Position numbers and translations under genes: made by a program. Below the pieces are notes generated by a model. That model had not been told where the DNA came from, made no database searches, and saw only the letters and a program-made list of their open reading frames with translations. A stretch of DNA of 64,000 nucleotides from Monocercomonoides exilis PA203 (taxonomy: Eukaryota > Protista > Preaxostyla): the NCBI GenBank assembly GCA_001643675.2, contig LSRY02000041.1, positions 372,001 through 436,000 of the forward strand, written 5' to 3'. Shown here piece after piece: positions 2,170 through 64,000 of the stretch (position 1 is its first letter; each line of letters begins with the position of its first letter).

Positions 2170-2473
2170 AAGCGTAATGAGAAAATGATAAAATTATTTT
2201 ATTCTAATTTTGAAAGACGCTTTAACAAATTTTCTTGAATTTCAGCCAAAAAAGTGGAAAAAATTCAAAAGGAAAAAAGAAAATTTTTATTATTACGGTT
2301 AACAAATAAAAAGTTTTCAAACATATTTTCACAGATTCATACCAATTACGAAAATTGTTAATAATCAATCAAAAAATTTTCTTTTGTCCATGATACCATA
2401 TTATTATATTTTTTCCCAGTTTTTTCTTTCGCACGTATTAATAGCGCAAAAAGAATTTTTCGAAGATACAGAA

Positions 2474-8400: not shown

Positions 8401-11400
8401 TAAAGCAGCTGTTATTACGAAAGAACACCAAAATGGAAGCATTGGCTTATCAGAAACGCATTTTAATCACATTTTGTCTCCTGCTTCTTATTTTGGCGGT
8501 GCATTATTAGTTTTACTATCTCAAGAATCTCAGCTTGTTATTGAAAAAGGATGCAGCTTTTCCGAATGTGAATCGAACTCGATAAATGGAGAAGGAGGTG
8601 CTATTTATTTGTCCACGGCACTTTATCCTCAATTGGTTATTAGCGCTTTAAGTGAATTTTCAAATAATTCTGCACATCGTGGGAGAAATATGTTTGTGAG
8701 TACATCAGACCTCAGGACACTTTCAGAATCAATGATCCCTCCGAAATTGATGGAAACGTATGGTAGTTCGAATTTTCTTGGAAAAGACAAATTCTCAGGT
8801 CTTCAAAAACTTTTGTATTTTTTCACCAAGTATCGCGCATCAAATATCTACGTTGATTCATCGATTGGTTGTGATGATTTTTCGTGTGGTAGCAAAAATT
8901 ACCCTTGTTTAACCATTACGCATGCATTGACGCATTTTGAAAGTCAATACTATAGAAATTTAGCTCTTTCGAAAATTCTATTTTTGGAAGAATCCCTGAT
9001 GTGTGAAGAGGGCACAAATTTAAGTATATCAAAATATTTAGACTGTACGATAAATATTCCCATGAATCTCCCAATTCTCAACTCTCCAGAAGCAGCTATT
9101 GAAAATTTTGGATTAACAAAAATTAACAACGTGGTTATTGATTTTCCGGAGAATTATGCTGAATCTTGTGGTTGCACTTTACGTTCAATCATTCTCAGTA
9201 ATGGAAAAAATGCTGATTTAAGGCTATCTGGAGTCAGCTTTCGAAGTGGAGGTACGCTTATATCTCGGGCGTTCAACGTTGTATATATTGGAGGAGGAAA
9301 ATTCTTTACAAATAATATTGAAATTGATACTCAAAACTCACAAAAATTGCATTATTCTCCATTGATCTTTGTATCTGCCAATTCAAAATTCGCTTTTGAA
9401 GCAAGAAAATTTAAGGCTAATAAAATTGTTGCTTGCAAAAGTGGATTATTTGAAATCTATGCGGATGAATATTCTCTCCTCCAATGCTCCTTTTCGCGCA
9501 TCACATCAGATATTCAATCTTCGATTTGTGTTGTTGAAGAGAGCCAGACCGCTATCATTGAAGAATGCACTTTCCATGAATGTGGAAATAATCTGAATGA
9601 TAATTCTGTTTCTTTTGGAGGGGTTATAAAAGTGAAAAAGAATTCGAATTTGTGTGTAATTAGCGACACAAAGTTTATTGAATGCTTTGTTGGTTGTGAA
9701 GCTGGGAGAGGAGGAGCTATTTATGTTGAGCCTGGAGCAGGAAGCCTTAGTATAAAATCTTCAACTTTTATTTCTTGCTATACACATTCAAATGTTCTTT
9801 CGATGGGAGGTGCCTTGTTCATTGGTCAGATGAAGCAACCTCCAGTTCTCAACCAGGTTTCTTTTCAGAGCTGCTCAGCATATTGTGGAGGGGCTTTATT
9901 TCTCGATTCTTCCAGTTCTGAATTAACTGCTTATCTGTTTAGCTGTCTATTTGATAACAATAAAGCATTTGAAAATGGTCATGGATGCGACATCTTTTTT
10001 ATTGATAGAGGACACAATGAACTTACCAGAGATAAATCTCCATTTATCAAATGTATGTCTAATTCAAAAAGTGACGAGCGATTCTTTTATGAGCATGATG
10101 ATATTCAAGTTGGAAGGAAGGATTTTATAAGCGATTTAAGCATAAAACGAAATGTTCATCCAAAGAAAGGTACTGACGACAAGCAATGTGGGGTTGATAA
10201 AGAAAATTATTGCAAAACAATAGGCATTGCTGTTTCTCTTTGTGTGGATTGGACTGATTGCTCGATATTCGCAGCAGACAAGCTGTTTGACACAGAAACA
10301 ACCACTATCAACATTGATAAAAAAATAATTGTAATTAAACCTATGGAAGATGTTGAGAAAAGCACAATTGTAACTGTTTTTAAAGAAAAGCAGTCTCTAT
10401 TTTATATTAACACTAATGGAAACTTACATTTGCAGTCATTTGCCTTAGAACATGATACATCTGTTTCGGCTAATTTAGAATCTCCATTATTTTATATGCA
10501 CGAAGGAAATCTTTTGATGGTTATGTGTGAGATTTTTACAAAGCAAATTCAATTTAAAAGTGAAGCATTTCAAAAGCCAATCATACAATGTTGTGATTCT
10601 AGTATTGTGATTTATGATAGCTCTATATCATCATTCACTTTGGAAGAGCACGCATTTATTGGTGTTTTTAACTCTAAGTACATTACTCTGAAATTGCAAA
10701 ACTGTAATTTTAGCAATATTGAGAAATTAAAGGGGGAAAAAGGAGCTGTTTATTCTCTAAGTGGTAGTACTATTTCTCAGGCAATAGAAATTCAAGAAGT
10801 TTCTTTTAATGGAATCAGAGCTTTTGATTCAACGAAAGGAGGCGCTCTTTCATTTGAATTGAATTCATTTGAAGATTACTTAACAATGAGGCAAGCTGGT
10901 GGAGAATATAAGCCAAACACTTTCGAAGGATGCTGCTCAAGGTTGTACTCAAGCTATGGTGGTGCTATCTTTTTGAGTGTTGTTCATATGTCGTACAATT
11001 TGCACTTTACTTCTTTTTCTGCGCCATCTGTAACGAATCCTAATTCAGCGGAATTTGGAAGAGATCTTTTTATAAAGGCGGAAAATTTGCCAATATTTGT
11101 ACAGTTTGCAGGTATATTAAGAGAGACATGTTCTTGGATTCCAAATTCAGTTGTTGGATGCGATTCGGATAGCATTGATAAGCCTGTTGATTTGATTTGT
11201 TTGTTTGGTGAAATGGTGTATGATTTATATGTGGGTAATGCAGGATTTGATAATAAAAATTGTGGATTTTCTTTATCAAGCAAGTGTAAAACCCTGGAGT
11301 TTTGTCTTCGATGTTTGAATAATGAAAGGGATTGCTCATTATTAATTGATGAAACTTTAAAGATAAATAGCATAAAGTTTGATGATTTTTTTAGACTTTC

Positions 11401-14400
11401 CATTTTATCTGCGAGCAAAGTTCGTCAAAAGGCTTTATTTAGCTTTTCAGCAATTTCATCTTTGGAAATAGAAGATATTGGCTTTGTTGAAGTTGAAAAT
11501 CAACTAAAGCTTAGTTACTTGTCATTTGATTTGCCTCAAAAATTCATTTCTGTCGGTTGTTGTAATTTTATTCCGAAAGTGTATATTGTTGTTGAAGGAA
11601 AATATTCGAGCTTGACCATCAGTTGCTGTGATATTCCTATTCCAGAAAAGGAAAGCTTGTTTCATTTTGAATTACCATTCGTAAAGGTCATTGGAGGAAT
11701 ACTTTGTATCGAATCTTTATTTATCTGCTACAATAATTCAGGCAAAGAATGTGCACGTTTTACAAGCAATTTTATTGAGATTGAAGATCTTTATGATGAA
11801 AATGAAACGATTATTTCTTCAGTTTCTATTTCTGTTTGTACATTTCGTTCAACTTTTTCTAAGGGATCTCTCGTTTCGTCATCTTCTTCAGGGTCAGTTG
11901 GATTTCGAGAAACTTTTGCTAATAACTGTTCAGTTCAAGGGGCATGTATCTTTGGCGCATTCTCAAAAGGTGAACTTGTGATTGAAGATACCATTATGAA
12001 TGAATGCTCATGCTTTGGAAATAATGAAAGCATTTTGATAAGTGTTCATGGGATTGATAATAACAGTCCAAATATCAAGCTTTTATCCTGTTCCTTCAAG
12101 CATATTCAAATGATTAATAACTCGGAGATTGCTTCTGCTATACTCATTGTTGACGTTGGGGAATTAATGATTGAGAATTGTCAGTTTTATAACATTAATA
12201 CATTTGGATCAGGAGGAGCATTGCATTTGGAAAGAATTGGCAGCAAAAGTTATATCAAAAACAATTATTTTTACGGCAATTCAGCTCAAAATGGAGGGGC
12301 CATTTATATATTGACAGAAAATTTGAATGATTCTGGGACAATTTGCTGCTTCTTCGAAAAGAATGTTGCTTATTCGAGAGGAATGGATGTATATTTAGAT
12401 GATCATCGTGCAGAGCCCGTTACAGAATCGAATAATCCATTTCGTGAGAGTTGTACTTCAACTATCAATGAAAGTACACTGTTTCACAATTCAAGTTTAT
12501 TAAATCGTACAGAATTTGGATGGATAAAGTATGCTGAAATTGAAAGAAAAGTGGCATCTAACGCTTCAAAAGGTATTGATAAAGAATACTGTGGATATGT
12601 TAATGAGACAAAATGTGATACAATTGAAACGGCTGTGAAGAGGACGAAAGAAATTGCTGAATGTACTGTTGCGTTAGATGGGCTCGTTTATGAAAACGAA
12701 AAGGAATCAATAGTTGTGGGTAGCAAAAGAATACAGATTAAAGGAGAAAGTGAGAAAGAAACAATTCTTGTATCCAACTTTAAAAAAAGAGTTGATTCTT
12801 TTTTTACTGTTAGCTCCGGATCGTTGAAGTTGAAAATTTTAGAAATACTTTTAGATCCATCGTATGAAGGAACTCGAACTAGCCCTGTTCTTTTAATAGA
12901 CGGCATAGGAACTGGATCCACCGTATTGGAGAATTGCACGTTGACTTCAGATTATATTGAAACTTCAGTTAGTCGACCTGTGGAAGCGAATTTGTTCATT
13001 GCTAAAGGTGGAAGTTTGAAACTCAAAAATGCGACAATTACAAATTTATTCTTCAAAAATTATAACCTTATTTCACTAATCAACAATTTCCAAATGCTCT
13101 CCCTGGATTCAACTGTGTTCAAAGATATCACATTAAATGGAAACGTTTGCTGCGTGTCAATTGATTGTTCGGAAGATTCAAAAGCAAGAATTGACTTAAG
13201 AAATAGCGAGTTCTCTCGAATTCTAGCAAAAGATTCAATTGAGGGTGCTGCATTATTTGTCCGTCAAGCAAAAAGTTCAATATCTATTACTATTTCAAAG
13301 ACAAAATTTACTAAGTGTTGCAATAAGGAAGGAGATGGCGGAGGAAAGGGAGCTGGTGTTTGTGCAATAATTGATCAACAAGCAGAAAATTATGTACCAA
13401 TGAAATTTTCTTCAGTTGAGTTTGCAGACAACTCTGGCTGTGCTGGGAATAATATATTCATTCGTTTCAAAAACAGTTTAGAAAGTTTTAATGAAATGAT
13501 CCGCTTCGATTTTGATTTGAAAAATTATTATGGAGTTCGTCATTTATTTGAAGTTGAGGATGCAAATGGAAAAATATCAGATTTAATGGATAGAGGTTCA
13601 ATAATGCTGTTGCCGTATAGTTCAGACTCAATATTTATTTCCGATGAGCATTCTTCTGATTCAATATTATGCGGAGAAAAGTCATCACCTTGCTCAACTA
13701 TAAATAGAGCAATCGAGCATGCCCAATCAAATGCGAAATCAAAGATTAGCATTGTTTCAAAGTTTTCTTTTCATTACGGAGTTGTATTTGAATCTGGCAT
13801 AATGCTTGAAGCAGAAAGCAATGAAAGAGTTTCGTTCTTTATCAATTCAGATACGAAATTTTTGGATAGCGTTGCTTTCCGTGTGAGATCAAATTTTTCA
13901 ATGTCACGACTGAATATTCTTTATTCAGGTTTTGCTGGCATTATGTATTTCACGTTTATTGAATGTGCAGGTGCTTTACGGGTTGTGAGGATATCAGATG
14001 TGAGCTTTGCTCCATTAGAATATAGAGATGTGTTCATTCAGCCAGTTTTTTTAAGAACAAAAGATTATTCTACTGTTTATATAGAAAATTCCACTTTGTA
14101 TGGCCTTTTGAAACAAAAGAACGTCAATTTGCAATTGATAGATTCTGAAAGATCTGAAATGTGTTCATGGACTCAAAATGAATCGCTAATTATGATAAAT
14201 GAAAGAGCAGAAGTTACACTAATTAATACAGATATAAGGAATTCTTCGTACGGAGGAATATTAATGGATAATGGAAAGTTGTTTGTTCAGTCAGCTACAT
14301 TTGCAAATAACAAGAAGAGGGAAGTGACTAATTTTGAAAATCTGCGCCATAATATCTTATGCTCATCTGGCGAGTTATTTATTGAAAAGATGAACGTTGG

Positions 14401-15106
14401 AGATTCTGAAAACTCAGAAAATTTATGGATAAGTTCAAATCAGAAGAGCTGCTTTCTTTCTGGAAAAGAATTTCTTCAACATAAGTCTGAGTTATTTGTT
14501 CCTCATTTGCTCAATGTTTCCAAAAGTGTCTCTTCAAATTTGCAAAATTACAATGGACGTGAAGGAATTGAAATTCTTAATAATAATCGAAAACAAAAGA
14601 ATTTGGATATTGGGCTTTTTATATATGGAAAATCTTTATTTCCATGCAGCCTAAAATGTGAAGTTTGTCATCACAAAAAAGACGAGCAATGCATTTGGCA
14701 TCAATCATCTTTTGATGTAATTAATGAAACGTTTGCCGTTGCAATGGCAAAAGAAGAAGACGTCACAATAGCTATGGATGAAGATGAAACTGTTTCAAGA
14801 ATTTTATTTGGGAATGGTTACAGTACAGACACTGCAGTTTTAGAAGTGAAGAATCACGGTAATCCAGAGCCTAGGAGCGATAGCCCAAAATTATCTAGAA
14901 CCGCACTTATTTTAATTATTGTAAGTTCTGTTGTTTTGGTTGTCATGGTTATAACAATGATTGCATTCATTGCTAGAGGAATTCGTCATAAAAAAAAGAA
15001 AGTTAAGAACAGTCCACGATTTTCACTTTTGACTTCATATCCAATTGTAATTTCTCAAGAAGAAATTGAATGTGCTGCAAAGCCATTACTTTCTGTTCAA
15101 GGATAA
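2474..15106 (+). CDS. Giant intronless type-I membrane surface protein (4,210 aa), pectin-lyase-like/PMP-type right-handed beta-helix repeats
   Basis: Likely start is ATG 2474 (MRKFIIVFYLFLSAKVTFA, signal-peptide-like). Many GGA(I/L) and FxxCxA motifs and recurring CG-x(4-5)-CxTI modules. One C-terminal hydrophobic helix (ALILIIVSSVVLVVMVITMIAFIA), then a basic stop-transfer segment (RGIRHKKKK) and a short tail; TAA stop. Confidence 0.9.
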   Translation: MRKFIIVFYLFLSAKVTFAKEFWLEESKNGKNCTYNDPCSSFRVVHEKLQHNESNFIFILKNINAISQLQWSFSNGLTISGAINDSASIIFSQVFSVTKLHESLFDNEKNGVINFVYVRFSLPNTFSELLENKPYSLIGSKGKELRIEESIFDASLISEQVVYSFVTVSDGSLFVISTFFETRQTVSLDASAFIIKEFTSNVYFGNCTFQNFNLRGNNTAICVNLPEDSSTFVQIEGCTFKNIQSTENSKLFGRGAIAFLSKGSEAKLHFSGKNATTEFSNCVSPTTGGAITVLAPFSVGLSFQNNNSRMLKFRDNQALLGNDMFLLVKDAKDLSTILFSKELNNGKIDESIAIYDKTQLSAAVDLNLLTILLGSESDVVYLDYESQFSSGIKNLAQNTYKSFDDAISKCKCMKSATLAVSKKAVGSQLKLEDQNCRFCFHITITSAFNLINNRVFNSNFIGIEDYCEIVYKPETVIEQEGDALFQSVHSLAVCGVSLHLPSSFVGNHSPFSIFYVCEGGKKSYDAKESAESSSTTTSSSSSSSSSILSLLLSYVEFVLQPSDKTIAFQLIVAKEGSISLNYVSVNNVGSFAYHFAFSLFEIDLSHVNIDESLHDVYVCNVDVAERSVFEFYANKETELANWQLQTSQSIYSFNSSSSQSNKYVLSSLTQHSFSSDFLEPHAIHLELCNFTFINTSSKTGAGCVTVNISTKSHLILFVSSLGIYNCISCSTSPLHNSSLYGIDDSSSSISSNSPSHPYFAFSPSHGAFTVITSAPSFIRLRNISTEKCTASKGKGGVFHLVGIASLIASQLSFVDASALKGGAMFVEIHECIPLSHGNSSDIQDPLLVKLKEANFSLFEIYSSKEILNDSYNIDDDTKLIQFVNVHFENCSASISDEDKGTDVYCIDRRLHYQKESFFFCSSSTSDVTSGLFLKTNEESEHKNWISTSLFKCSETENVFSKFFVNGENDVSAKKILQTSSFSSGASLRDSNVRILNDILLKTVSVDPIYGRDESHGDVKGCEDDQTVACKTIQKALMLLSRNGMVKCVGGTYDSEDIPIQLIEQQKVTIEREEGSQEFCDLHLMNDLKNQIYISVTSSSSFLLHNFRVISDTSFLHMLKTTLFAVSDSGELFLTSCTVTRQLNSPTVDRFCEPLFRVSGGTLALSTTTVENINMEVYPLIYFPSDRTGAAIILSDCVFTDILLDCTIGGEPSLMQIVSTEDKNVDLSVTRCKIRRCTSEVATKGGAISIYCYNPEMKLSLEGRLSISFCRGSFRGTFGGAIYMDISKHIPKYSQKDANLELTGNTAQNGNSLFIRAKNLEEIIKQPQFAPGFFSKVPGEVIGMDENQFIDTGIDLFALLATTKLETVFLDPLGMDKRYCGILFHPCKTFDEALKHVTPPDAKIILRSPKMLSASPTTFDISLSIFYETTGFESPFFSIELNQIFEENEGYFNMDSQSFSLQFVDFSLSKGNLVNGGGKYPVALFKTTNTGKLELHGSFVNYTSKNISTCVLRMEGGRARLSSISMVESTYLFNVSPFYITSGSFTISNSYFSNFILSGADGIVCVPKAAVEDTGNERAISIFNSIILNCSLDSNFNGIGTFVSCVGECQMTISASLFSNCRAYGKEGSGGALFFSDFKALSIIGSKSSHVVFSNCRAKQSGGALYISIKEEKPISKTMILEYVEINDCQSKYGGGVFIMMDFSSINCSFIISFHKCVVVSGGQGHDIFMRHTGNEDISKEQSPFARSITSNLEEGRVYYKGKEIEGTQKEFICGSKANRSVSTDFGEDKPNCGIGNNRACKTINYVTNEASGWIDTVISLKGNSYVVNSVQNFLNGDVAMSSDPTNYILVKSAFEDEIPEKTAFMIGSVVQMSFLHFVHSAEYERNLFISLIFIDEGGKLHLTRCTFDSGSTLEETDELLCAPLFVAKSSLIVSECNISNFHLNEHSLIEMKSFSNFVFLNVNLSYFSHIVSCKNSKAAVITKEHQNGSIGLSETHFNHILSPASYFGGALLVLLSQESQLVIEKGCSFSECESNSINGEGGAIYLSTALYPQLVISALSEFSNNSAHRGRNMFVSTSDLRTLSESMIPPKLMETYGSSNFLGKDKFSGLQKLLYFFTKYRASNIYVDSSIGCDDFSCGSKNYPCLTITHALTHFESQYYRNLALSKILFLEESLMCEEGTNLSISKYLDCTINIPMNLPILNSPEAAIENFGLTKINNVVIDFPENYAESCGCTLRSIILSNGKNADLRLSGVSFRSGGTLISRAFNVVYIGGGKFFTNNIEIDTQNSQKLHYSPLIFVSANSKFAFEARKFKANKIVACKSGLFEIYADEYSLLQCSFSRITSDIQSSICVVEESQTAIIEECTFHECGNNLNDNSVSFGGVIKVKKNSNLCVISDTKFIECFVGCEAGRGGAIYVEPGAGSLSIKSSTFISCYTHSNVLSMGGALFIGQMKQPPVLNQVSFQSCSAYCGGALFLDSSSSELTAYLFSCLFDNNKAFENGHGCDIFFIDRGHNELTRDKSPFIKCMSNSKSDERFFYEHDDIQVGRKDFISDLSIKRNVHPKKGTDDKQCGVDKENYCKTIGIAVSLCVDWTDCSIFAADKLFDTETTTINIDKKIIVIKPMEDVEKSTIVTVFKEKQSLFYINTNGNLHLQSFALEHDTSVSANLESPLFYMHEGNLLMVMCEIFTKQIQFKSEAFQKPIIQCCDSSIVIYDSSISSFTLEEHAFIGVFNSKYITLKLQNCNFSNIEKLKGEKGAVYSLSGSTISQAIEIQEVSFNGIRAFDSTKGGALSFELNSFEDYLTMRQAGGEYKPNTFEGCCSRLYSSYGGAIFLSVVHMSYNLHFTSFSAPSVTNPNSAEFGRDLFIKAENLPIFVQFAGILRETCSWIPNSVVGCDSDSIDKPVDLICLFGEMVYDLYVGNAGFDNKNCGFSLSSKCKTLEFCLRCLNNERDCSLLIDETLKINSIKFDDFFRLSILSASKVRQKALFSFSAISSLEIEDIGFVEVENQLKLSYLSFDLPQKFISVGCCNFIPKVYIVVEGKYSSLTISCCDIPIPEKESLFHFELPFVKVIGGILCIESLFICYNNSGKECARFTSNFIEIEDLYDENETIISSVSISVCTFRSTFSKGSLVSSSSSGSVGFRETFANNCSVQGACIFGAFSKGELVIEDTIMNECSCFGNNESILISVHGIDNNSPNIKLLSCSFKHIQMINNSEIASAILIVDVGELMIENCQFYNINTFGSGGALHLERIGSKSYIKNNYFYGNSAQNGGAIYILTENLNDSGTICCFFEKNVAYSRGMDVYLDDHRAEPVTESNNPFRESCTSTINESTLFHNSSLLNRTEFGWIKYAEIERKVASNASKGIDKEYCGYVNETKCDTIETAVKRTKEIAECTVALDGLVYENEKESIVVGSKRIQIKGESEKETILVSNFKKRVDSFFTVSSGSLKLKILEILLDPSYEGTRTSPVLLIDGIGTGSTVLENCTLTSDYIETSVSRPVEANLFIAKGGSLKLKNATITNLFFKNYNLISLINNFQMLSLDSTVFKDITLNGNVCCVSIDCSEDSKARIDLRNSEFSRILAKDSIEGAALFVRQAKSSISITISKTKFTKCCNKEGDGGGKGAGVCAIIDQQAENYVPMKFSSVEFADNSGCAGNNIFIRFKNSLESFNEMIRFDFDLKNYYGVRHLFEVEDANGKISDLMDRGSIMLLPYSSDSIFISDEHSSDSILCGEKSSPCSTINRAIEHAQSNAKSKISIVSKFSFHYGVVFESGIMLEAESNERVSFFINSDTKFLDSVAFRVRSNFSMSRLNILYSGFAGIMYFTFIECAGALRVVRISDVSFAPLEYRDVFIQPVFLRTKDYSTVYIENSTLYGLLKQKNVNLQLIDSERSEMCSWTQNESLIMINERAEVTLINTDIRNSSYGGILMDNGKLFVQSATFANNKKREVTNFENLRHNILCSSGELFIEKMNVGDSENSENLWISSNQKSCFLSGKEFLQHKSELFVPHLLNVSKSVSSNLQNYNGREGIEILNNNRKQKNLDIGLFIYGKSLFPCSLKCEVCHHKKDEQCIWHQSSFDVINETFAVAMAKEEDVTIAMDEDETVSRILFGNGYSTDTAVLEVKNHGNPEPRSDSPKLSRTALILIIVSSVVLVVMVITMIAFIARGIRHKKKKVKNSPRFSLLTSYPIVISQEEIECAAKPLLSVQG

Positions 15107-17251: not shown

Positions 17252-18627
17252 ATGTTCAAAAGTTTGCGATTGTTATTACAAGTGAATTCTTGTTTATTGC
17301 ATTTTTCTTTGTTTTTATTGAAGAATTGTTTGAGGAGCTTGAAGGTTGTGACGAAGAACAAAAACGTAAAATTAAAGAAATGAATGAAACAATTGATGGA
17401 ATGAATAAAGAAGAATTTAAATCTATTTTAACCGAAGAAATATTCAACAAAATATCCAAAATGATAGAGGATAAAAAAATGTCAATGGAAAATGCAATTT
17501 TGCTGCTGAAACACATTGGATATTGCAAAGCGCTTGAAAATGTATATGTCCTATGCTTTGAGAGATCTTCGTTGTACAAGAGATTTAAAGAGATGATTAT
17601 TGAAGAAGAAAAGAAAAAAGAGGAAAAGAATGAAATGTTTTTAGCTGATCTTTGCGAATGTTATATTTCTTTGAGCTATGATTACCCACCTGAATTTCTT
17701 TATATATGTGTGACTTGTCTTCTGAAAGTTGCTTTGAAGAAAGAGGGAGATGAAGAAGCACAAAAAGAAGCGGAAATAGCGTTATTGGCTTTGAGCAAAG
17801 CTGGGTATTATGTGTGAAATTTTCTATGAAATTTTTAACGTTTTTGAATTTTCTATCTTGTTTTTTATTAGGAAATTAGACAAGAACTTTTCCTCAAAGA
17901 AATCAAAGAAATCATCAAATGTCATCAGGAGAATCACAATCTCACTCGGCTTGCCTATCTGTCTGCTTGGGACTTTTTGTTTTTCCGACTTTCCAATGAA
18001 AGAAGCTTGGAAGAAGTGATTACGAAAGAACTGCATTTTGCGAGAGAGGCAAGAAGAGAATTGGAAGAGCTGATGAAATGCATGGATTGGACGAGAAAGG
18101 AAGACAGAGGAAAAGAAGCGAAAGATATTCTAATAATCAAGGGATGGCTCCATTTAATTATCTGTAACATATTATCAAGCAAATTATGGAACGAAGAACT
18201 TGTTGGACTTATAAGGAGCATTATTCAACTGCTTCGATCCATGAAAAACAGATTCAGAGACATTCGAATTCAATGTGTTTTTTCCTTGAGATGTTTAGTT
18301 GTAAACAAAGCTTGTAGTGTTGAGCACTTGTTGAAAGGAGGAGCAATTGATGTCATTCTAGAGGAGATTAGGCAACCAACATTGGATGACAAAATAGTAA
18401 ATGAAAGCTTGTTGTTCTTTATGAATGTTTCAGAAAAATTGAAAGAAGAGAAGAACGATGAAATGGAAGAAGCGAAAGAGAAAGAATTGAAAAAGAAAGT
18501 ATTTGAAAAGATGGAGGAAGAAGGATACGAAGATACCATCACAAGCTTTAATAGGACTCTTTCTTCATTGAAAGAGCAATATAGTAATGGATTATCGTTG
18601 AATATTTCTGATCACTTGCTAATGTGA
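17252..18627 (+). CDS. Lineage-specific multicopy alpha-helical hypothetical protein, paralog 1
   Basis: Introns 17262-17323 (GT..AG) and 17812-17871 (GT..AG) join MFKKLFEELEGC...LSKAGYY|EIRQELFLKEIKEIIKCHQENHNLTRLAYLSAW... to TGA 18627. Collinear with the paralog at 19866-21279. The true start may lie in a further upstream exon. Confidence 0.8.
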
Positions 18628-19865: not shown

Positions 19866-21279
19866 ATGCGTACAAAGAACGTCGCGGATAGTTTCTATGG
19901 TTTGATGTTGTAGTTTTATTTTAATCTTTTTGGTTGGATTTCTTTCTTTATTTAAATTTTTTGAAGAATTGTTTTCCAAGCTTAAAGATTGCAATGATGC
20001 TGAGCAGAAACAGATAATTGATGAAATGAACCAAGTGATGGACAAAATGAACAAAAAAGAATTTAATACTGTTTTTACAATTGACACATTTGAGAAATTT
20101 TTCAAAATGATTGAAGAAAAGAAACTGTCAATTGGGAATGCAATTCTTTTATTGAATCACATGCGATATTGCAAAGCACAGGAAGATACTCACATTAACA
20201 GCTTTGCAAATTCTATGTTTGACAAAAATTTTGATTTGATGATTGTTAAAGAGGAGAAGAAAAATGAGGGGGAAGATGAAATTCTTTTGATTGATCTTTG
20301 TAGAAGCTTTCTTTTGTTGCATGACGAGCACACTGTGTTTTTCTTTCGACCAGCTTGCATTCATTTCCTTCTCAAAGTGGCCTTGAATAAGGAGGAAAGT
20401 GAAAAAGATCAAAAAAAAGTGGAAATGGTTTTCCTCGCGTTGAGTAACATTTGCGAACTAGAAGCATGGAAATTTATTTTTCTTTTTTTGCGTTATTGTT
20501 TCTTATTATTTCTTTAGGATCTAAGACAAGAACTGTATTTGAATGAGATCAAAGAGATCATCCAGTATCATCAAGAGCATCGCAACCTGATACAGCTTGT
20601 ATATTGGTCAGTTTGGAGATTTCTGATAAACAGATTTTACTCCGACATAACTCTTGAAGGAGTGATTGTGAATGATCTCTGTTTGGGGAGAGAAGCAATT
20701 GGAGAAATTGAAGAATTGTCGAAGAACGTCGATTGGAAGAAGAAAGAAGATGAAATGAGCAAAGAAACAGAACCGAAAGAATTGCTTATGATCAATAGAT
20801 GGCTTGATTCACTTGCTTATTTCTTTAAATATAGCCAATTTGGTTGCAAAGAAAATGCAGAATTGATTGCTTGCGTTGTGACATTGTGCAGAAAATCATT
20901 TGATTATTTCAAAGAAATAAGTTTCAGATCCATTAGTCTTTTTGATGCAATGATTTCAGAAAGCACTGTGAGTATTTCAGACCTTCAACAAAACGGGGTC
21001 TTTGATATTGCTTTGAAGATAATTCAGCAATCAACGTTGAATGATGATTCTATGGAGATATGCATTGACTTCTTTTGGAGGGTGCACGAAAGATTGAATG
21101 ATGAGATGGTTGACGAAACGGGGAAAAAAAAACTCAAAAAGCTTAAAAGAGATATATATGAAGAAATGGAGCAAGAAGGATGTGAAGATAGCATCGCTGT
21201 GTTTTATTGGAGATTGAGTGAAGACGCTTTATTTGATGATATAGGATATACTCTTTATGTTTTGTGTGTGCATTTATAG
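19866..21279 (+). CDS. Lineage-specific multicopy alpha-helical hypothetical protein, paralog 2
   Basis: MRTKNVADSFY-ELFSKLKDC; intron 19900-19966 (GT-AG); second intron 20464-20517 with a GC donor; then DLRQELYLNEIKEIIQYHQEHRNL... to TAG 21279. Intron positions match paralog 1. Confidence 0.8.
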
Positions 21280-53719: not shown

Positions 53720-54218
53720 GAGGTGGATTTGTTTGCATTTTGTTGCTCATGTTTTTTACAAATGAGTTTTTTGAATATGACTCTGAGCAGAATTATTGTG
53801 TGTTTTTCTTTGTAAATGAACGAGTTATATTTTTCCCCCAATAATATAAGCCCATCTTGTTGTATTTTGATATTTTGACACTTTCGTTTTGTTTGTTTGT
53901 TTGTTTATGCTTTGTTTCTATTTATTTGAATTTTTTATATTTTATTTTTCTTATTATTCATTTTATTCGTTTGCCGATTGAGTTGACGGAAAAGCGAATA
54001 GTTGGAGTTCGAACTTTCAGATTTTAGTTATTTTTTATAAATCATTATAAATATGTTCAAAACGGTTTTATTGCAACAAAGGAACTTTTCCAAATTCTGA
54101 ATTGGATGAAAAAAACGAATTCAATAAAAATAGTGACAAAGTTATCAATCAAACCTGATAGTAATTTTTAATTTTATCTTTAAATTCCCACTAAAATTGA
54201 TGAAATAGAAGTGGGTTA

Positions 54219-54283
54219 TATACCTGTGTGACGTGATGAAATTTTTGTCTTCACGTCCGTCAGTGAATTTTGGTCACGTCAGT

Positions 54284-54324
<41 letters not shown>

Positions 54325-57300
54325 TTTTTTTTTTTTTTTTTTCTATAAAGAAAAATGATTTCAAATTATTTATAGTTAACATTTTTTATTTTTGAATAAA
54401 AAGTTTATTTGAAATAATTTTTGAAAGGAACAATTTTTGATTTGATTTTCTTTTTCCCATAAATCGATTTCAATTTTAAATTAAGAATGAGTTGCTTTTA
54501 ATCAGAGATCCAATACCTCATTTGCACAATAATGTTCATAATGTGTCACTGCACTACTTTTCACATAACGATTGATGTATCTAGCACTTATACGGTTTAA
54601 TATTATTTAAAACTCTCTGATTTTTCATTTTGATGTTTTTTCTTTTTTCAATCAAATTTTCATATTTCTGCCCACTATTCTCAAGTATTTCATTTCTTTA
54701 TTGCTTATTTTAGACAATCACTGATGCCTCTTATGTTTGAATGTTTGTTGAATTTTTTCAAAGAATATTTTAAAAGATTTCTCTTTTTCATCATTACCTC
54801 CGCATCCTTTCCTGTCCCCACGCTCTTTCATCGATTCAACCTTCAATTTAAAACAAACAACTTCATTTTTCAGACATGCACTTCATCAAATGCTGCTGTG
54901 GTGCATGTAAGAACAGAAACTCAAAGATAAACACCAGGATAATTAATTTTATTCGATTTAAACAGTCATCGTTTTTAATGGTGTGAAAGGAATGATTCAA
55001 ACGGAGGGTCAAGTTGTGGAAGAGCACTTTGTGTTGAATGGGCAAATGCATATCTGTTAATTGCTTTATGTTTATATTTCAACTGTTCGACCAGCGATCA
55101 TGCCGGAGCGTTTGATTGCTTATATCTGCTAAATGTTAATATAGCAAAATCCAATTTCACCACTTGCACCGCTCTGCATGAAGGAGCTGCTTATTTGTAT
55201 TGCAATCAACCTTATTCTGTTTGGACATTCTCAGATAACAGAGTGGAAAGTTGCTCAATAACAGATTGGTGTGGAACTGGTTGGTACTTTTCCCTCTATT
55301 ACATACCCTCAGATGCTCAATTCCTGTTTTCCAAATGTTAGTGTATCGCAAATTCTGGTGGTGATTCTGCTGGCTCTCTCACATTTCATTGGCCTCCACA
55401 AAATAAACCAAGTCAGTTTTCAATCATTGAGTGTCAGTTCATCAGTAACAATCTGACTGCCTCTTCCACTTATGGCGGAGCAGGAATATACTTTGATGGA
55501 ACTTACTCTTGGATGAATGGAATGAAATTCATCACTTTCTGTTTCTTCGATGGAAACACAGCAACAAACGGCAGGGGGAATGATGTGTTCTTCAGTGGTA
55601 ATGCAATCACCCAATCTCCATTTGAGAATTGTGGATCAGCAACCACAACAAAAAGAGTGTGGAACAGCAATACAGCTGATAACGCTGTGTATAATGGCTG
55701 GCTCCCTCTCATCGCCCAGAACAAAATCGTTTCTAGCAGCGGAACTGATGCTGATGCCTGTGGCAGACCCCAACAGACCCCATGTGCCACCATCGAGTAT
55801 GCCCTCAACGGCTTCATTTCCCTCCTCCACGACGCCTCTCTCACCCTCCTCACCTCAACATTTGTTCCTCTTCAAACACTCACTTTCAATGCAATTGATA
55901 CAAAAATCACAGGAAACGGAACAGATGCCACCACTATCACCTCCAGTGGCATTTCCCAACCAGCTTCTTCTTCTTCATTTCCTTTATCAACATCTTATTC
56001 ACCAGATCCATCTGCCTCGTCTGCCCTCTTCCAACAAACTCAGGGCTCCCTCACAGTTTCAGCCCTCACCATCGCCCACAACTCCTCAAACCCCATCGCC
56101 CCCATCCTCTTCCACCTCTCCAATAACTCCCCTTCCCTCAATCTCAACACAACAACCATCACCGGAGCAACCTCATCTTCATCATCAATCACAACCCCCT
56201 CTTCTTCCTCACTGCTGGCTCCCTCGCCCTCAACCACACAGCAATCACCAGTCTCGCCCTCAACAGTCAAAGCATCTTCCACCTCACCTCCCTCACAAAC
56301 TCCCTCACACTCAACTCCTCCAACTCTCTGCGATTTCGTTGTAAACAAAAGCCACTTAGCGAATATAATGCTTTTTCAACAATTTTTGAGGTTAATTCTT
56401 CGTTCATTTCATTTTATCCGAATAACAACAAAGATAAACAGTCTCCAAATATTTCTTATAATATTTTTCTTTCTATATGATGTGATATGGATCAAAGAAT
56501 AATAATTATCAAGTGTATGAATAGAATATTTTTTAAAAAATATTTTTATCTTCTATTAATCAACTGTCAATAATCATTCAATGTCTTTCATCTTCATATA
56601 TATGATGCATTCAAGTGATTACCCAAACCTAACTCGCGAACATGCAAAGAGCGAAAAAGCCCTAGAAAGCTATGAAGGCATATATTGCTAATCTCCGTCC
56701 TATACGTGCGCTTTAAAAAATGTACAAAAAATTTCTATTTTTCCATTTCATTATTTTCAACAACATTATAATAAATATCAGCATTATTCAAAGAAATTGC
56801 TTCTGTCTTATTGTTTTCAGTGAAAAATTCATAAGTCGGTTGTTCAGCTGGAATTTCAGAGAAATAATAACCAATTTCTCCGGTGGCAAAGTCGAAGAAG
56901 ATTGATGTTTCTTGTCGGTTGATGAAATGGATAAATGCAAATTTGCATTGTCAGAAGAGATGGTTGAATGAAAAATTCGAAATCAATATTCTTTGAAGAT
57001 AAATTTATCGATGTTGAATTTTCATTATATTTGTTTATGAAACGAAGAGACGAAAACAAACAACGAGGAGCGAATATTCTGAAGAAATGAAATGCGTAAG
57101 GTGATGTTCTTTATTAACTTCTGAAAACCAGTTCGTGAAAATCACTTCATTTGAACAAATAAATCATTTGCAAATGAAACTTCGAGCTGGATGTTTTATT
57201 GAATTGACTCGCAGTGATATTTTCTTCATTTGTTCTTCACAATAGACAATCTATTTTGATTTCAGCAATATTATCTTGACAAAAGCTCAAAAAAAACTTT

Positions 57301-57688
57301 ATATCTCAAACCATTTTATTGGAGACAAAGACAAATGCAACTCTTTTGCCAAAGAGTTAAAATTTGCTTTTTTGATTAACTCATGGAGACTCTGACTTGA
57401 CATGACGGGCATGACGGTCAATGACGATCTGAAATTCCTTTTTTGCCTTTTCGTCAGTATCCCATTGAAATAAATATTTTGAATTTTGCATAAAAAAAAT
57501 AAAACAATGTGAAAGTGAATTTTTTAATGTTAAAAAATTATATGAAAATGAAAAGAATAAAGTTGACAATTCCTTTTCGTTTTATTTCTTCTGAAATAAC
57601 GATAATAAACTACTGACGTGAAAGTTTTCGTTAAGTCCGTCAGAAATGAAAAATTTCACGTCATTTGTCATTACGTCACACAGGTTTA
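54219..57688. mobile_element. Non-autonomous DNA transposon (3,470 bp) with 21-bp TIRs and an 8-bp TSD (hAT-like), carrying a gene fragment
   Basis: TIR TATACCTGTGTGACGTGATGA versus right end reverse complement TAAACCTGTGTGACGTAATGA (19/21). TSD GTGGGTTA at 54211-54218 and 57689-57696. Subterminal inverted CACGTCAGT(G/A)GTTT at 54275-54288 and 57607-57620. No transposase ORF. Confidence 0.85.
54790..56330 (+). pseudogene. Frameshifted internal fragment of a beta-helix surface-protein gene (cargo of element 54219-57688)
   Basis: Pieces such as CSTSDHAGAFDCLY...FTTCTALHEGAAY and ITFCFFDGNTATNGRGNDVFF...SPFENC...SSSGTDADACGRPQQTPCATIEYA, with stops and frameshifts. No signal peptide or TM end. 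Confidence 0.8.
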
Positions 57689-58739
57689 GTGGGTTAGTCT
57701 TTTTATTTGCACCCTTTTTTTATAAGCTCCAAATTTGGTATAGATGCAAATCGTACCACTTTCAGTTTGCATTTTTTCAAAATATAAATATTATAGCGAT
57801 AATCTACATAATTTAACAAAGCGATCCAAGGAGGGAAATTTCGAAATTCGATCATAAAAATTTTCTAAAAAAAATGATTTTTTGCAACCCATAATATTTT
57901 CATTAAGATCACAAAGAATTAAAAACTCAATTTACTGGCTTTACAAAGTTCAGTACAACTTCACAATGCAATATTCAAAGAGGATATAATATTTTTATTT
58001 GTTGAACAATCGAATTTTCACATATATTGTTTGCTATGAAGTTATTTTATAAATATTAAATAAATACGCGATATCTCCGTTTTGGAAAATTAAAGTGCAA
58101 TATTTCAATAACACCGCCGAAACAGAAGCTGAGTAAAACATATGAATAGTGTAATGATAATTTTCAGTTGAATTTTAATTTTTTTAATGCTATTTTTACA
58201 AATTTTTAAGTTGGATTGATTTGAAGATGAAGGTATAGTGCTGCACTTGGAATCGATGATGCGGGGAAAAGCCATTTGGAGAGAGGCAAACTGGTGAAGG
58301 GGGGAGTGAGGGGAAATGAAGATTTGTGGAGGTATTTTATTCTTGTTTGTTCATTTTCTTCATGTTCCATTTTTATTTTTGTTTGTATTTTTTTTTTATT
58401 TCATTGATGTGAGATGCGATCAGGTATTGTCAGAGGCGCTGGGGGAGCATGAAATATGGGATGTGGAAACACTGCTTTTTTCTGGGACATTCCTGGAAGA
58501 AATTATGAGAAAACAGCAACCGAAGAGCGTTTGGCAGAATGATCCAGGCGGAAAAAACTGAAGAGAATGGGGAAAGAAATTTTTGTGGAATTTATTTTTA
58601 CAAAAAATTTTTTTGGAAGCAGCAGCAGATGAGGCAGGAAAATGGATACAGCTGCATTGGGATATTTTACGATATGGCACAAAGAATCATGTGGCAAATG
58701 AGAGAAGAAAAATGAAGAATTTCTGCGAGAGAATCGCAT

Positions 58740-60267
58740 TTCTCATCTGTTTCCCCATTCCACTCATCGCCCTCCATTTCCTTTGTTTCATTTTCCAAAT
58801 TATCATTTTTCAATATCTCAACAGCAAATGATGCATGTTCACATTCAACCACTACATCAACCCAAACCTCATGTGATGAGAAGTTGCTCATTCTCATCTG
58901 TTTGCGATGCGTATGATGGAGGGATTGTTCCTTCCCTCAACAACTCCTTGGCTTCTCTGACTGCTTCAAACACCTCGTTTGTTGGATGTTGCAGGGCAAG
59001 AAACGTTGCATGTGAAGGAACTGCAGATAATAAGCTGACTCCAGAGAGACAAAACGAAACAGAAAATGGAGCAAATGCATTTATTTGGTGCGAATGGGAT
59101 GGATCGAAAACAACAGGAGAAAGTGACTCGTGGGCCGATGGAAAATCGAGCGGAGGGGCAATCTGTATGTACAGCCAATCGTCCGCCACTGTTTCTGTTT
59201 CGCATTGCGTGTTTAATGGATGTATTGCACATTATGCTGGAGGAGGAATTAATTGCTATAGTATTAATTCTGTTGAGATTGTGAATAACACATTTGATTC
59301 ATGCACTGCGCAAAGTTATCGAGGGGGTGGAATGTTCATTTTGACGATTTCATCGTGTGTTCGGATCAGCGGATGTGAATTCAAGGATTGCAAAGCAGTT
59401 AATTATGGAGGAGGACTTTATCTTGATTATTTTAATGTTTCAGGAGCAGGATGTGTTGGAAATGAAAGTGGAGAAGGGGAGAGTGCGTGTGTGTTTGACT
59501 GCAGCTTCACTTCATGCTCAATCACAAGTTCAAGTGGCGGAGGCATGTATTGTCGAACTGTTCCTGTCACATTTAAAATGAGGAGCATTCAATTTATTTC
59601 ATGTTTAGCAGCTGCAAATGGAGGAGGTTTTTGGATTAATCCGAATAGAGAAAATGCGCCAAATGACACATTTTATTGCTATTTTTTGTTCTTTCATGAA
59701 TGCAAATGCAGAGCAACATCCACTCCATATGGGCATGATGTGATGTATTATGATTACTACAGCGTATATTTATCTCAAAATAATCCATTTCATGAATGTT
59801 ACACCACAAACACAGATGACAAGAGAGTATGTTATGGATACAACTACTCGAATGCAAATGCTTGGACATTTCAGCACACAGAAAAGAAGGAATGGCTAAA
59901 GGATAAGACGATCTATGTTTCTGTGAATGGGAGTGATGGATATGAGCTATGCGGGTCAAATGAATCAAATCCGTGTCTGACGATGAAGAAGGCATTTCAA
60001 ATGTGTGAGATACAGATAAGCTTGACAATCACACTGATGGACGGGGATCATGTGAGTGAGGCAACAACGATTGATATTGGAGAAAAGAAGATTTCGGTCA
60101 TTGGGAGAGGCAAAGATAAGAGTTCGATTGGAACAGGAGTAATTTCTTTTCTATCATCAACTGGAGAGTTGTTGAGTGTGACGAGCGGGCAGTTGGGGGT
60201 TGGGCATGGAGGATCGATCACAATTAGCAAGAAATCTGTCACCGAGCGTGTTTGTGATGCCTGCTGA
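58740..60267 (+). pseudogene. Truncated beta-helix surface-protein gene fragment (cargo of element 57737-62303)
   Basis: About 450 codons open: SSGGAICM, AGGGINC, RGGGMF, YGGGLY, YGHDVMYYD...NPFHECYTTN...IYVSVNGSDGYELCGSNESNPCLTMKKA. Apparent frameshifts near 58873 and 60210; lacks signal peptide and TM anchor. Confidence 0.8.
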
Positions 60268-60934
60268 TGTTGAAATATTTTAACTTGCAAAAATAAGGGT
60301 TAATCCCAAGTCTGAAGGAGAATCCAATATTGGAATTGTCATTTGCACCCACTCTGCCACAGTTTCCAATAATAACTACTGATAAAGAATTCGATTCAAC
60401 TGCAGCCCAACAAATTGCAAATCACATTCCACATATGTGTGGAACGTCATTCCTGATCCAGGAAGAAGCAATTTTTTGAGCCAACTTTGTTATTTTTTAA
60501 AATTATTTGTATGCTCTATTTATTCGTTTCTAATATTTTATATTTTATTTATAAATACTTTATAAATGATGAATAATTGAATATATTGTTTTTTATTTGT
60601 GCAAGCTTTAACTTAATTGCACTCGTTTCTTTTATAAGTGCGTCAGCCAACATCAGCAGCTTTGAAATGCCAAAATAAAACAGTAATGCATTACCATAAT
60701 AGAACTTGTTGTGAATACTTTGTTAAAAACAGGAAAATAATAATTTTTCACAAACAACAATGAACCCCAAATAGCAATGAACGAAAAAGAAGATGAAAGG
60801 AAAAAGAAATAAACAATTTGAATGGAAAAAAATGGAAAATCGAGAAACAATGTTTGAAATTCCTTTGAAAAAAGTTAAGATTTTTTGAAAAAAAGCATAC
60901 TAAGATATCCCTCTCCATTCCCATCACGCATTTT

Positions 60935-61760
60935 TAAGTAGTCTCTTTGTTTCGCCTCCACTCTTCTCTTCCTTCTTTTCGTCCTTTCACTCGATAATCT
61001 CCGTAATACTCAATGTTCATCATTTGTTTTCTTTTCCTCTTTTTTCCAACAGCCAACTTTCCCCATCTCAACTTGAACGCTCTGTCAACTTCAGCAGCTG
61101 CTCCATATAAAATGAGCTTTTCCATCATATCCTCTTCTTATATCACTTGTATTGAAAAATCTCATCCCTGCTTCAATTTCATTCCCTTCTTCCTTTCTTC
61201 TCGTCTTTCTCTAAACTTTTATTTGTATCTTTTTGCTGTTGCTGCTCGGTAACGCACAACCTTACAACCATCATCTTCAAAATGAACATATAGGTGATGC
61301 TAATAATATTGCTGAACGTAGATATATCTCTCACAAATATGAAGTAATCCATTTTATTTGCACATAAAAAAATCTTCACTTTTTCATGCCAATTCGTTTC
61401 TTTCTTTCTACTTTTTCTTTTTCTTCCAACGCTTCAGCAAACCTTGTTCGATAATGAAGTTCTAATGAACTTTGACGATTTTGTTTTATGCTCCGCGCCT
61501 TCTCATCCCTTCCGTAAGCCCTAGCTCCACTGCATATCCCAACCTCAGTCAAACAGCTTTATAACCTTTCATCTGATGTGAAGGTTTCTTCAAAGTTTTC
61601 CTCTAACAAGTCACTTCTTCTTCTCAATCTTCGCCTCTCATTCTTTTGTCCTTTCTGATCAATCCATTTCTCTAATCTAACTCCTTTAAATTCTTATCAT
61701 TCAGCTTCAACATATTCTCTCCATTAATGAATTTTCGGTGCCCACTCTCTTCTTTCCTTG
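60935..61760 (-). pseudogene. Highly decayed coding remnant, possibly a DIRS-type tyrosine recombinase
   Basis: Fragments LTEVGICSGARAY and MEKLILYGAAAEVDRAFKLRWG...MMNIEYY loosely resemble the C-terminal YR box (aGi...aySir...tkL...G...ev....RW...m..yY). Many stops. Confidence 0.25.
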
Positions 61761-62344
61761 AAAACTTTACTCTTTCAAAACTTGTGTCTTATAAATCTTT
61801 CAAATGCTTCTGAGATTAATCATGGAAAAAAAGGAAGATAGAAAATATTCCAACAATTATCTTATTAACATCGATAACAATTTAAAAATAAAAAAAAGAC
61901 ACCTTCAAATGTTGTTATATCTGTCACTGCATCGTTTGTAATATCCGCAATTGTGCGTAAATTTGTGTTCAGTTAAAACATTGACTTTAAATAAAATAAC
62001 TTCATAGCAAACAATATATGTGAAAATTCGATTGTTCAACAAATAAAAATATTATATCCTCTTTGAATATTGCATTGTGAAGTTGTACTGAACTTTGTAA
62101 AGCCAGTAAATTGAGTTTTTAATTCTTTGTGATCTTAATGAAAATATTATGGGTTGCAAAAAATCATTTTTTTAGAAAATTTTTATGATCGAATTTCGAA
62201 ATTTCCCTCCTTGGATCGCTTTGTTAAATTATGTAGATTATCGCTATAATATTTATATTTTGAAAAAATGCAAACTGAAAGTATTACGACTAACACCTAT
62301 GCCCCAAATTTTTGAAGAAAAAAAAAACAAAAAAATACAGACTT

Positions 62345-62988
62345 AATTAGCAAAAACTAACGAAACTTGGATCAAATAGTCTTCTAATTTTTCTTTTTCC
62401 TGAACTTTGATCTGCAGAATTTTCTTCTTCAATATTTTCCAAATCATCATTCAAAATTCTTCGATAAACTCTTTTTTTCTTTGACTTAAATGGAAGAGAA
62501 TCTTCAATGTTTTCTGTTTCATCTTCGGCTTCAGAACATTTCGCTCTTGTTCGATTATATTAATTTTCTTCTTTCATTTCCAAAAAAAGCTTCATTTATG
62601 AGCAGTATTCCGTAAAAAATCAAAACGATTTGAATAAGTGGGCAAAGGAAATGAAGAGTGTTTTGGCAATTAACGTAAAACTGGTCCTGATGATTAAATC
62701 AAAACACCACTTGTTTCAAAGGCATTCTTAATTACTGATGGTGCGAATGCATAGAGAAGAGCTTGAGGAAGGATGCCTGCTAAAGCCTTTCTGTTGGAAG
62801 AAGCAGTTGAAGATTGTGGGATTTCTATTGATGAACTAATAACAGATATAAGAACAGCAAAAACACCTCTATCGAGAGATTGCGAAATATGTGTTGTGTG
62901 AGGAATACAGTCGAAATCGGATACAATCACATCGAAAATAATCAACATCTGTTATGGTCACAATTTTCCATGCACTGACATTTTTTGC
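62345..62988 (-). pseudogene. 3' remnant of a pogo/Fot1/Tigger-type (DDE_1) transposase
   Basis: CIPHTTHISQSLDRGVF matches the LPphTThllQPLDvgvF motif carrying the third catalytic Asp, followed by VIKNAFETSGV (ikNaFrktGi) and an acidic/basic tail with frameshifts. Confidence 0.75.
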
Positions 62989-63060
62989 TAGACCTGTGCG
63001 ACAAGTGGCAATTTTTGCCAGTAACTGACACAGGTGACCGACATGACAATTTTTTTTGAT
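62989..63060. mobile_element. Probable left end of another TIR element of the TA(N)ACCTGTG family
   Basis: TAGACCTGTGCGAC resembles TATACCTGTGTGAC (12/14), is followed by TGAC motifs and lies about where pogo similarity stops. No matching right end or TSD was found. Confidence 0.4.
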
Positions 63061-64000
63061 CAAAACCTTCATTTATTAAAAAATTCATTTTCATTATTTT
63101 TGTGAAAAAAGAAAAAGATAATTCTCCACCAAGTGAGAAAATATATATTAACCTATATTGAAACATTTTATGAATAAAATAAAACTAGAAATTCAAATCG
63201 TGAAGATAAAATTATGTGAAAAATGGGTTTGTGACAAGATCAGCGAAACTTGGAATTTTTTTGCCACTGGAAGTCACTTCTGTCACTGACTTCACTTCCT
63301 GTCAGAGAAGCGAAACTGCTTGAAAAAGAAACAGAAGATTATATTAACTTGTTTGACTTTTGAAATGTTGTTTATTTCATTTCACATAAAGAATAATCCA
63401 TAATTTTTCTTTTCGTTTTCAGAAATTTTTTTTTTCAAAGATATGAGCACAAAACCAACCAGCAAGTATTACAGTTTCATTTTTCGTTTTATTCGATAAC
63501 AAAAACTCCACAAAGCTTAACATGAAATGAATTTTGTTTTGCAAATTGTTCAAATTGATTATCTTATTCATTATAAATTATATTGTGTTGTTTTAACTTT
63601 TTCAAATAAAAAAGATGGAATTGACATTTATTTTTCTCTTTGCATGTGAGGCTTCTTGTTTAAAATAGATTTGAATCATGTGCTCTTTAAAAAGAATATG
63701 TGAAGTTAATTGTGTTTTCGATGTCAAAATTTCCTGCCTGGCGAGTGAAAAATAGAACTTGTTAATGATCATTGCAATTGATAAAGGTTGTTGTTGAATG
63801 GTGTCCGAAAATTAATTTTATTTATTAAATCTGATTCTTATGATCATTTTTTTCTCACTTTGATCATTCGTCTTTTTTAAATATATACTTTAGATATTTT
63901 TCTCGCAAACGCTATTCTTAATGAGGTCATCATTTTTTCTTCATATGACTGTAATCATTCTTGCTTTCGTTCTGTCTTTCCATTCAAAGAACATTCGAAG

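Follow-up and report, generated by a model that had tools for sequence, protein, structure and literature searches.

Two adjacent Pack-type elements carrying receptor-gene fragments in the protist Monocercomonoides exilis

A 64,000-nucleotide stretch of the genome of the mitochondrion-less protist Monocercomonoides exilis PA203 (contig LSRY02000041.1, positions 372,001 to 436,000, forward strand; hereafter the window) contains two DNA elements, E1 and E2, which lie so close together that only 32 bases separate the right target-site duplication (TSD) of the first from the left TSD of the second (Table 1). Both are multi-copy, transposase-less Pack-type elements bounded by terminal inverted repeats (TIRs) and TSDs, and both carry a host-gene fragment, in each case a putative beta-helix module of a receptor. 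Two adjacent elements with unrelated ends, TSDs and no transposase had been proposed from the sequence of the window alone (the original prediction); their TIRs and TSDs are confirmed here, and other insertions with TSDs of their own have been found. Throughout, C-numbers denote contigs of the assembly (82,301,135 bases in 101 contigs), the window lying on C38.

Structure and copies of the two elements

The TIRs of E1 agree at 19 of 21 positions, and TGACG motifs are clustered close to either end. Near-identical full copies occur at C38:451021-454489 and C45:103428-106862, with older copies on C15, C55 and C91; those on C38, C45, C15 and C91 start and stop at the same bases as E1, each with its own perfect 8-bp TSD, and a 9-bp TSD for E1 is ruled out by these other copies. 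Outside a 72-bp patch discussed below, the C38 and C45 copies are >99% alike and, each having its own TSD, moved as a loaded unit. The end that characterizes the family, TAAACCTG(T/A)GTGACGT, has 56 matches in the genome and none in the control.

The much longer TIRs of E2 are 97% alike, with seven mismatches in the outer 21 bp and an inner 292 bp that is identical bar one indel. Ends of the GGCATAGG type have 96 genome matches at ≤2 mismatches (control 0), mostly as inward-facing pairs 2.4-4.8 kb apart and in a few cases 7-11 kb apart; eight of ten pairs examined have a perfect 8-bp TSD and the remaining two have one mismatch. The part of the E2 backbone from 60270 to 61990 was found in only 20 places, mostly inside such pairs. 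The long TIRs of a single E2-family element, which range from 227 to 541 bp, are usually 97-100% alike and closer to each other than to those of any other element, which fits arm-to-arm conversion; E2 itself may have lost its mobility, its tips having decayed while the inner 292 bp was homogenized. About 20 pairs (e.g. C6:318422-320818, L012, L020) form a uniform 2.37-2.45-kb subfamily, probably young, with ends (GGCATAGGTCTAAATTGTACCAG) related to those of E2 and an interior of degenerate K/E-rich frames. No beta-helix match was found in the 1.5 kb examined of three copies of this subfamily, which limits the original inference. Every 3.3-4.8-kb E2-family element whose cargo side was readable contains the module of E2, in whole or in part.

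No transposase open reading frame or motif was found inside E1 or E2, the cargo being the sole long frame, and a search of the arms in family consensus frames for hAT or Merlin motifs or transposase remnants also gave none. In E2 a long stop-free frame runs from 58702 to 60264 and, upstream of ~58870, is out of frame with the host reading. The earlier figure of ~1.5 kb of cargo per element is right for E1 and too low for E2, where the cargo reaches ~2 kb at the DNA level.

A 347-base contig from a 2016 run covers 57431-57777 with zero differences, which rules out for the E1-E2 junction the assembly chimera named as a risk in the original prediction. A further contig of that run covers the end of the E2 cargo (60134-60278), while the E2 right flank is not among the read-contig pieces listed; no empty-site joint was seen in the reads.

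Table 1. Features of E1 and E2, in window coordinates.
Feature	Position	Strand	Remarks
E1 left TSD	54211..54218		8 bp, GTGGGTTA, same as 57689-57696
E1, non-autonomous hAT-type element	54219..57688	+	3,470 bp; complete copies on C38 (100%) and C45 (98%), with identical termini and each with a TSD of its own
E1 left TIR (21 bp) and subterminal TGACG/CGTCA motifs	54219..54283	+	
E1 left arm, non-coding after an initial poly-T run	54284..54861	+	common only to subfamily-A elements, 89-100%
E1 cargo: broken beta-helix module fragment	54862..56324	+	4 stops, 1 frameshift; ~residues 428-923 of host gene L046
Putative gene-conversion patch in E1 cargo	55611..55682	+	18/23 differences between E1 and the C45 copy
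E1 right arm, non-coding	56325..57667	+	common to subfamily-B elements, 78-86%
E1 right TIR (21 bp)	57668..57688	-	
E1 right TSD	57689..57696		GTGGGTTA
E2 left TSD	57729..57736		8 bp, CCAAATTT, same as 62304-62311
E2, non-autonomous element with Merlin-type ends	57737..62303	+	4,567 bp; family of paired ends with 8-bp TSDs
E2 left long TIR	57737..58050	+	314 bp; tip decayed, inner part homogenized with right arm
E2 cargo: same N-terminal beta-helix module, second receptor subfamily	58246..60213	+	
E2 backbone	60214..61990	+	without open frame
E2 right long TIR	61991..62303	-	313 bp
E2 right TSD	62304..62311		CCAAATTT

Affiliation of the ends and origin of the cargo

A first hAT search at E 0.001 gave no link to the E1 ends; the link came from a relaxed search, in which the hAT dimerization domain (PF05699) was found 3076, 3077 and 3080 bp inward of TAAACCTGAGTGA ends, on the same strand, on C1, C6 and C46, where ~0.2 chance matches would be expected within 4 kb. 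Two of these three matches are above the Pfam cut-off, and the sister subfamily of E1 has the TAAACCTGAGTGA end on its right side. Because the hAT domain stands at nearly the same distance from a family end at three loci, and with its 8-bp TSD, short TIRs, subterminal repeats and ends common to the hAT-domain loci, E1 is a hAT-type element. At C6:1160235-1168544 two E1-type ends form an 8.3-kb pair in which a hAT domain lies 3.1 kb inward of the left one and is followed by ~5 kb of DNA, possibly a hAT carrying both transposase and cargo; four 3.3-3.5-kb elements at C17:74570-83340 and C62:205835-225757 have E1-type TIRs, other interiors and no hAT match; and two 324-bp pairs on C41 resemble miniature inverted-repeat transposable elements of the same family.

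The Merlin families described from M. exilis start with GGCATG, GGCATA, GGTATA, GGCAAG or GGTAAG and have 8-bp TSDs (PMC8101967). The E2 family end, GGCATAGGTGTAAAT, is identical to none of F1-F7; the nearest is the published F4, with which it agrees at 13 of the first 15 bases if one gap is allowed. With an 8-bp TSD and a GG-starting TIR like those of the local Merlins, E2 is likely a Merlin derivative. TSDs of Pack-MULEs (Pack-type Mutator-like elements) and Mutator are usually 9 bp, unlike those of E2 and its relatives, which are 8 bp in every pair checked. Since their ends are unrelated and their superfamilies probably differ, E1 and E2 are independent of each other.

The E1 cargo matches the host gene L046 at ~75%, and its relatives are M. 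exilis proteins of 2,000-2,500 residues, most of them with PF07714, in which a transmembrane-like segment lies ahead of a degenerate kinase region. The E2 cargo matches receptor arrays on C80 and C53 at 76-84%, arrays in which no E2-type ends were found. At the protein level it matches sequences 2,000-2,900 residues long at 55-60%, and PF07714 is present in two of them. Over the same module, either cargo is ~24% identical to the donors of the other. As judged from these alignments, the two cargos derive from two subfamilies of tyrosine-kinase-like (TKL) receptor genes and represent a homologous part of these, the N-terminal beta-helix module; TKL kinases (320 of 332 kinases) are the largest gene family of the organism (PMC6759080). 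Host genes continue past both cargo ends, in frames of 1,300-1,400+ codons with no TIR nearby, while the homologous DNA of the elements stops inside the TIRs, so that the suspicion that cargo homology might run past the TIRs falls away.

A Pfam search of either cargo and of the giant gene at 2384-15106 of the window gave no match. The cargo ectodomain is nevertheless predicted to fold as a right-handed beta-helix (parallel beta-solenoid), in agreement with the beta-helix surface family first proposed: the E2-cargo model is a beta-solenoid (pLDDT 80.8) that aligns with many pectin-lyase-like helices at Z 15-19 in a second structural aligner, while Foldseek returned only beta-helix rows, with E not significant. 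The giant gene, a 4,240-codon frame with a leader, alternating beta-helix-type modules and one C-terminal membrane segment, was considered as a donor and ruled out (~26% identity, E 1e-5); it is only distantly related and has no Pfam kinase match, and the donors are TKL receptor genes. The module junction motif to which the original prediction drew attention does occur four times in the giant gene, and once near the N-terminus of TKL receptors, and both cargos do span it. By our own estimate a random 480-residue receptor piece would hold the junction about one time in five, which makes the shared junction weak to modest evidence.

Receptor genes at C80:1.18-1.80 Mb, C53:0.20-0.43 Mb and on C25 stand in arrays with many inverted pairs of identical score (e.g. 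C80:1177368 and 1187186), which suggests palindromic duplication or conversion. Annotated receptor proteins often begin in the middle of the first module, with genomic frames extending ~400 codons upstream, and N-terminal sequence may be missing from their gene models.

History of the cargo

Copying and dispersal of receptor modules by non-autonomous TIR elements, as originally envisaged, is borne out by cargo that lies wholly within the TIRs on many chromosomes. Routine capture is not. In all 13 E1-family copies compared, the 5' cargo breakpoint is the same or nearly so, most cargos starting at residue 428 of the host (416-434 overall), and a single ancestral capture is thereby indicated; the 3' ends differ between subfamilies (residues ~923 versus 980-1016). 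The record looks like one old capture per family followed by amplification, rather than routine fresh capture.

The cargos are much more divergent than the arms. Across six elements of the E1 family, identity is 90-95.5% in the left arm but 73-80% in the variable cargo, the corresponding host-host figure being 77.8%, and descent of the element cargos as a single clade is rejected for the variable part (p-AU 1.8e-6, approximately unbiased test). Along the E1 cargo the nearest host switches every 100-150 bp, and identical tracts of 133, 91 and 73 bp are shared with three different host genes; host genes also share such tracts with one another. The sharpest case is the comparison of E1 with its C45 copy, where 18 of the 23 differing sites fall within the 72-bp patch (P ~1e-22 after allowing for all windows); the patch is in frame, and the C45 allele has 7-8 differences from two host genes versus 18 from E1. 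In the other family, E2 and its C17 sister are 92-99% identical in the backbone and ~78% in the cargo, less than the 82-84% match of the E2 cargo to host arrays. Whole arms appear to have been exchanged as well: in E1 a left arm from one subfamily is joined to a right arm from a second. In two elements of the E2 family the arms are only 76-78% alike although the TSDs are perfect, which indicates that half-swapped elements still moved. The patterns in these alignments are those of a cargo overwritten repeatedly from receptor genes, probably by gene conversion.

We suggest, with a probability of roughly 0.72, that two non-autonomous families each made a single old capture of a receptor module, were spread in trans, and then underwent ectopic conversion of their cargo. 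Under this scheme a hAT-type family (E1) and a Merlin-type family (E2) would each have taken up receptor N-terminal ectodomain DNA once, long ago, through template switching or gap repair at the DNA level (for models see PMC8277862), and hAT or Merlin transposases supplied in trans would have spread the loaded elements. The cargo would be overwritten because it still has homology with hundreds of receptor genes, between which short patches are already being exchanged, whereas the arms, having no host homologue, would diverge slowly; the same homology would allow half-swapping between elements. Most likely the cargo is a passive passenger that records, and does not drive, the mosaic evolution of the receptors: it is without leader, transmembrane or kinase parts, is for the most part broken and, in a weak test on contigs, showed no element-specific RNA, the RNA contigs on the cargo being short and possibly derived from paralogues. 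The proposal that the elements expand the surface family accordingly finds no support in these incomplete cargos; of the mosaic diversification proposed with it, the mosaicism is real, and its visible direction is from host genes into elements.

Several points weigh against this scheme. The three hAT-bearing loci, known here by coordinates only, show open frames of merely 249-283 codons. No autonomous partner with a DDE_Tnp_IS1595 transposase was found within an E2-type pair among the 150 scored of 575 Merlin candidates, and internal breaks of the E2 family were read in only some copies. For the conserved, Ser-rich 3' part of the E1 cargo the AU test, which assumes no recombination, gave no significant result (p 0.26). 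The host comparison draws on the best-matching 16 host loci.

The passage of patches need not be one-way, and flow back from elements into genes is possible. It is doubtful, in our judgement, that transposons of several superfamilies constitute a mobile archive of receptor tips, receiving and returning patches and so building a pool of templates for diversification, and unlikely that the elements are dispersed silent stores whose cargo alleles reach expressed receptors by two-way conversion. The presence of a homologous module in two superfamilies would agree with such a role, and the long identical tracts between cargo and genes are neutral as to direction; the receptor family is, however, the largest in the genome and thus the likeliest cargo by chance, and no case of flow from element to gene has been shown. 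Some cargos do keep long open frames, notably at L038:2007-3860, where an E1-family cargo is without a stop over ~580 aligned codons (618-codon frame) and is the best candidate for an expressed cargo, but most have stops, with no element-specific RNA seen. The idea that the cargo is the hypervariable part of the receptor was likewise not supported among the hosts compared, a biased sample in which the greatest variability lies elsewhere.

Distinctly less probable is that the whole cargo was recaptured repeatedly, the interior being refilled from a different receptor by gap repair after excision or breakage, as the routine capture first envisaged would imply. Sister cargos as distant as host paralogues and forming no clade would be expected from such refilling, as would the differing 3' ends of the subfamilies, but the common 5' breakpoint would not, nor would a nearest host that changes several times within one cargo, nor otherwise identical copies separated by a 72-bp patch. 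That nothing was captured at all, the TIRs having come to surround resident receptor pseudogenes or the whole being a segmental duplication or misassembly, is hardly tenable even in a repeat-rich region with a long poly-T run in the E1 assembly, since TSD-bounded copies share exact ends in different flanks, host-gene homology ends inside the TIRs and a short-read contig bridges the E1-E2 junction. Single old captures followed by ectopic conversion therefore remain our preferred account.

Genomic setting and comparison with known systems

E1-type and E2-type elements meet elsewhere too. At L040:1423-1505 and 4711 onward (C91:1712295-1720161) an E1-family element is inserted 84 bp inside an E2-family left TIR, a second close pairing, and besides the case in the window three E1-type elements lie <10 kb from E2-type ends, against 0.6 expected (P ~0.02). 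Both families are also inserted in other transposons, including DDE_1 genes (L027, L035), a reverse transcriptase (L019) and a Merlin gene (C74:81348), and the proximity is likely due to shared islands rich in transposable elements. Elsewhere in the window, 17288-18149 and 19925-20804 form a direct duplication (66% identity) with two pairs of short open reading frames without significant Pfam match, and a TGAC/GTCA-rich region just right of E2 (62960-63300) resembles the end of a further TIR element.

These results extend gene-carrying TIR transposons to a metamonad protist and place two superfamilies at one locus, one of them Merlin-type. New at this locus are the hAT link of E1, the dated 72-bp patch and the half-swapped elements. 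The patch would be a rare dated instance of ectopic gene conversion, following a very recent transposition; as it lies in non-coding passenger DNA, it would allow conversion in the receptor family to be measured, both in rate and in tract length, without selection on the protein. Were flow back into genes real, the elements would amount to a transposon-borne version of a variant-antigen archive.

Pack-hATs have been described in maize and animals (PMC8903248, PMC8277862), and 208 of 370 animal Pack-TIRs are hAT elements (PMC8277862). Like the animal Pack-TIR (PMC8277862) and plant Pack-TYPE elements (PMC8903248, PMC6379663), E1 and E2 are non-autonomous, multicopy, bounded by TIRs and TSDs and loaded with a gene fragment; unlike them, they inhabit a metamonad and carry cargo from the host's largest gene family, apparently overwritten patchwise after transposition. 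The words Merlin and gene conversion are absent from the animal Pack-TIR paper (PMC8277862), and an incomplete literature search found nothing on Merlin gene capture or on Pack elements in oxymonads or other protists. E2 shares GG(C/T)A-type ends and an 8-bp TSD with the Merlin families F1-F7 (PMC8101967), but these are ~1.5 kb long with TIRs of 23-29 bp and a transposase, whereas E2-family elements have TIRs of 230-540 bp, a length of 3-4.8 kb, host cargo and no transposase. In its long TIRs and captured gene fragments E2 is like the rice Pack-MULEs (PMC5861414), TSD length apart.

The cargo donors resemble the TKL receptors of M. exilis in having PF07714, a transmembrane-like segment and a long ectodomain (PMC6759080, PMC8767320), and the cargos differ from whole receptors in holding one ectodomain module only. 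TKL kinases have been noted to overlap 'unclassified repeats', with no transposon explanation offered (PMC8767320). Transposon cargo likely accounts for some of the short 'hypothetical' gene models of this genome and for a share of its unclassified repeats, which calls for caution in annotation. In trypanosomes and Borrelia, archives of VSG pseudogenes and vls cassettes supply an expressed site. As in those systems, short in-frame patches are exchanged here between broken or partial copies and a large family of surface genes; unlike them, the flow is seen only into the partial copies, and the copies are themselves mobile.

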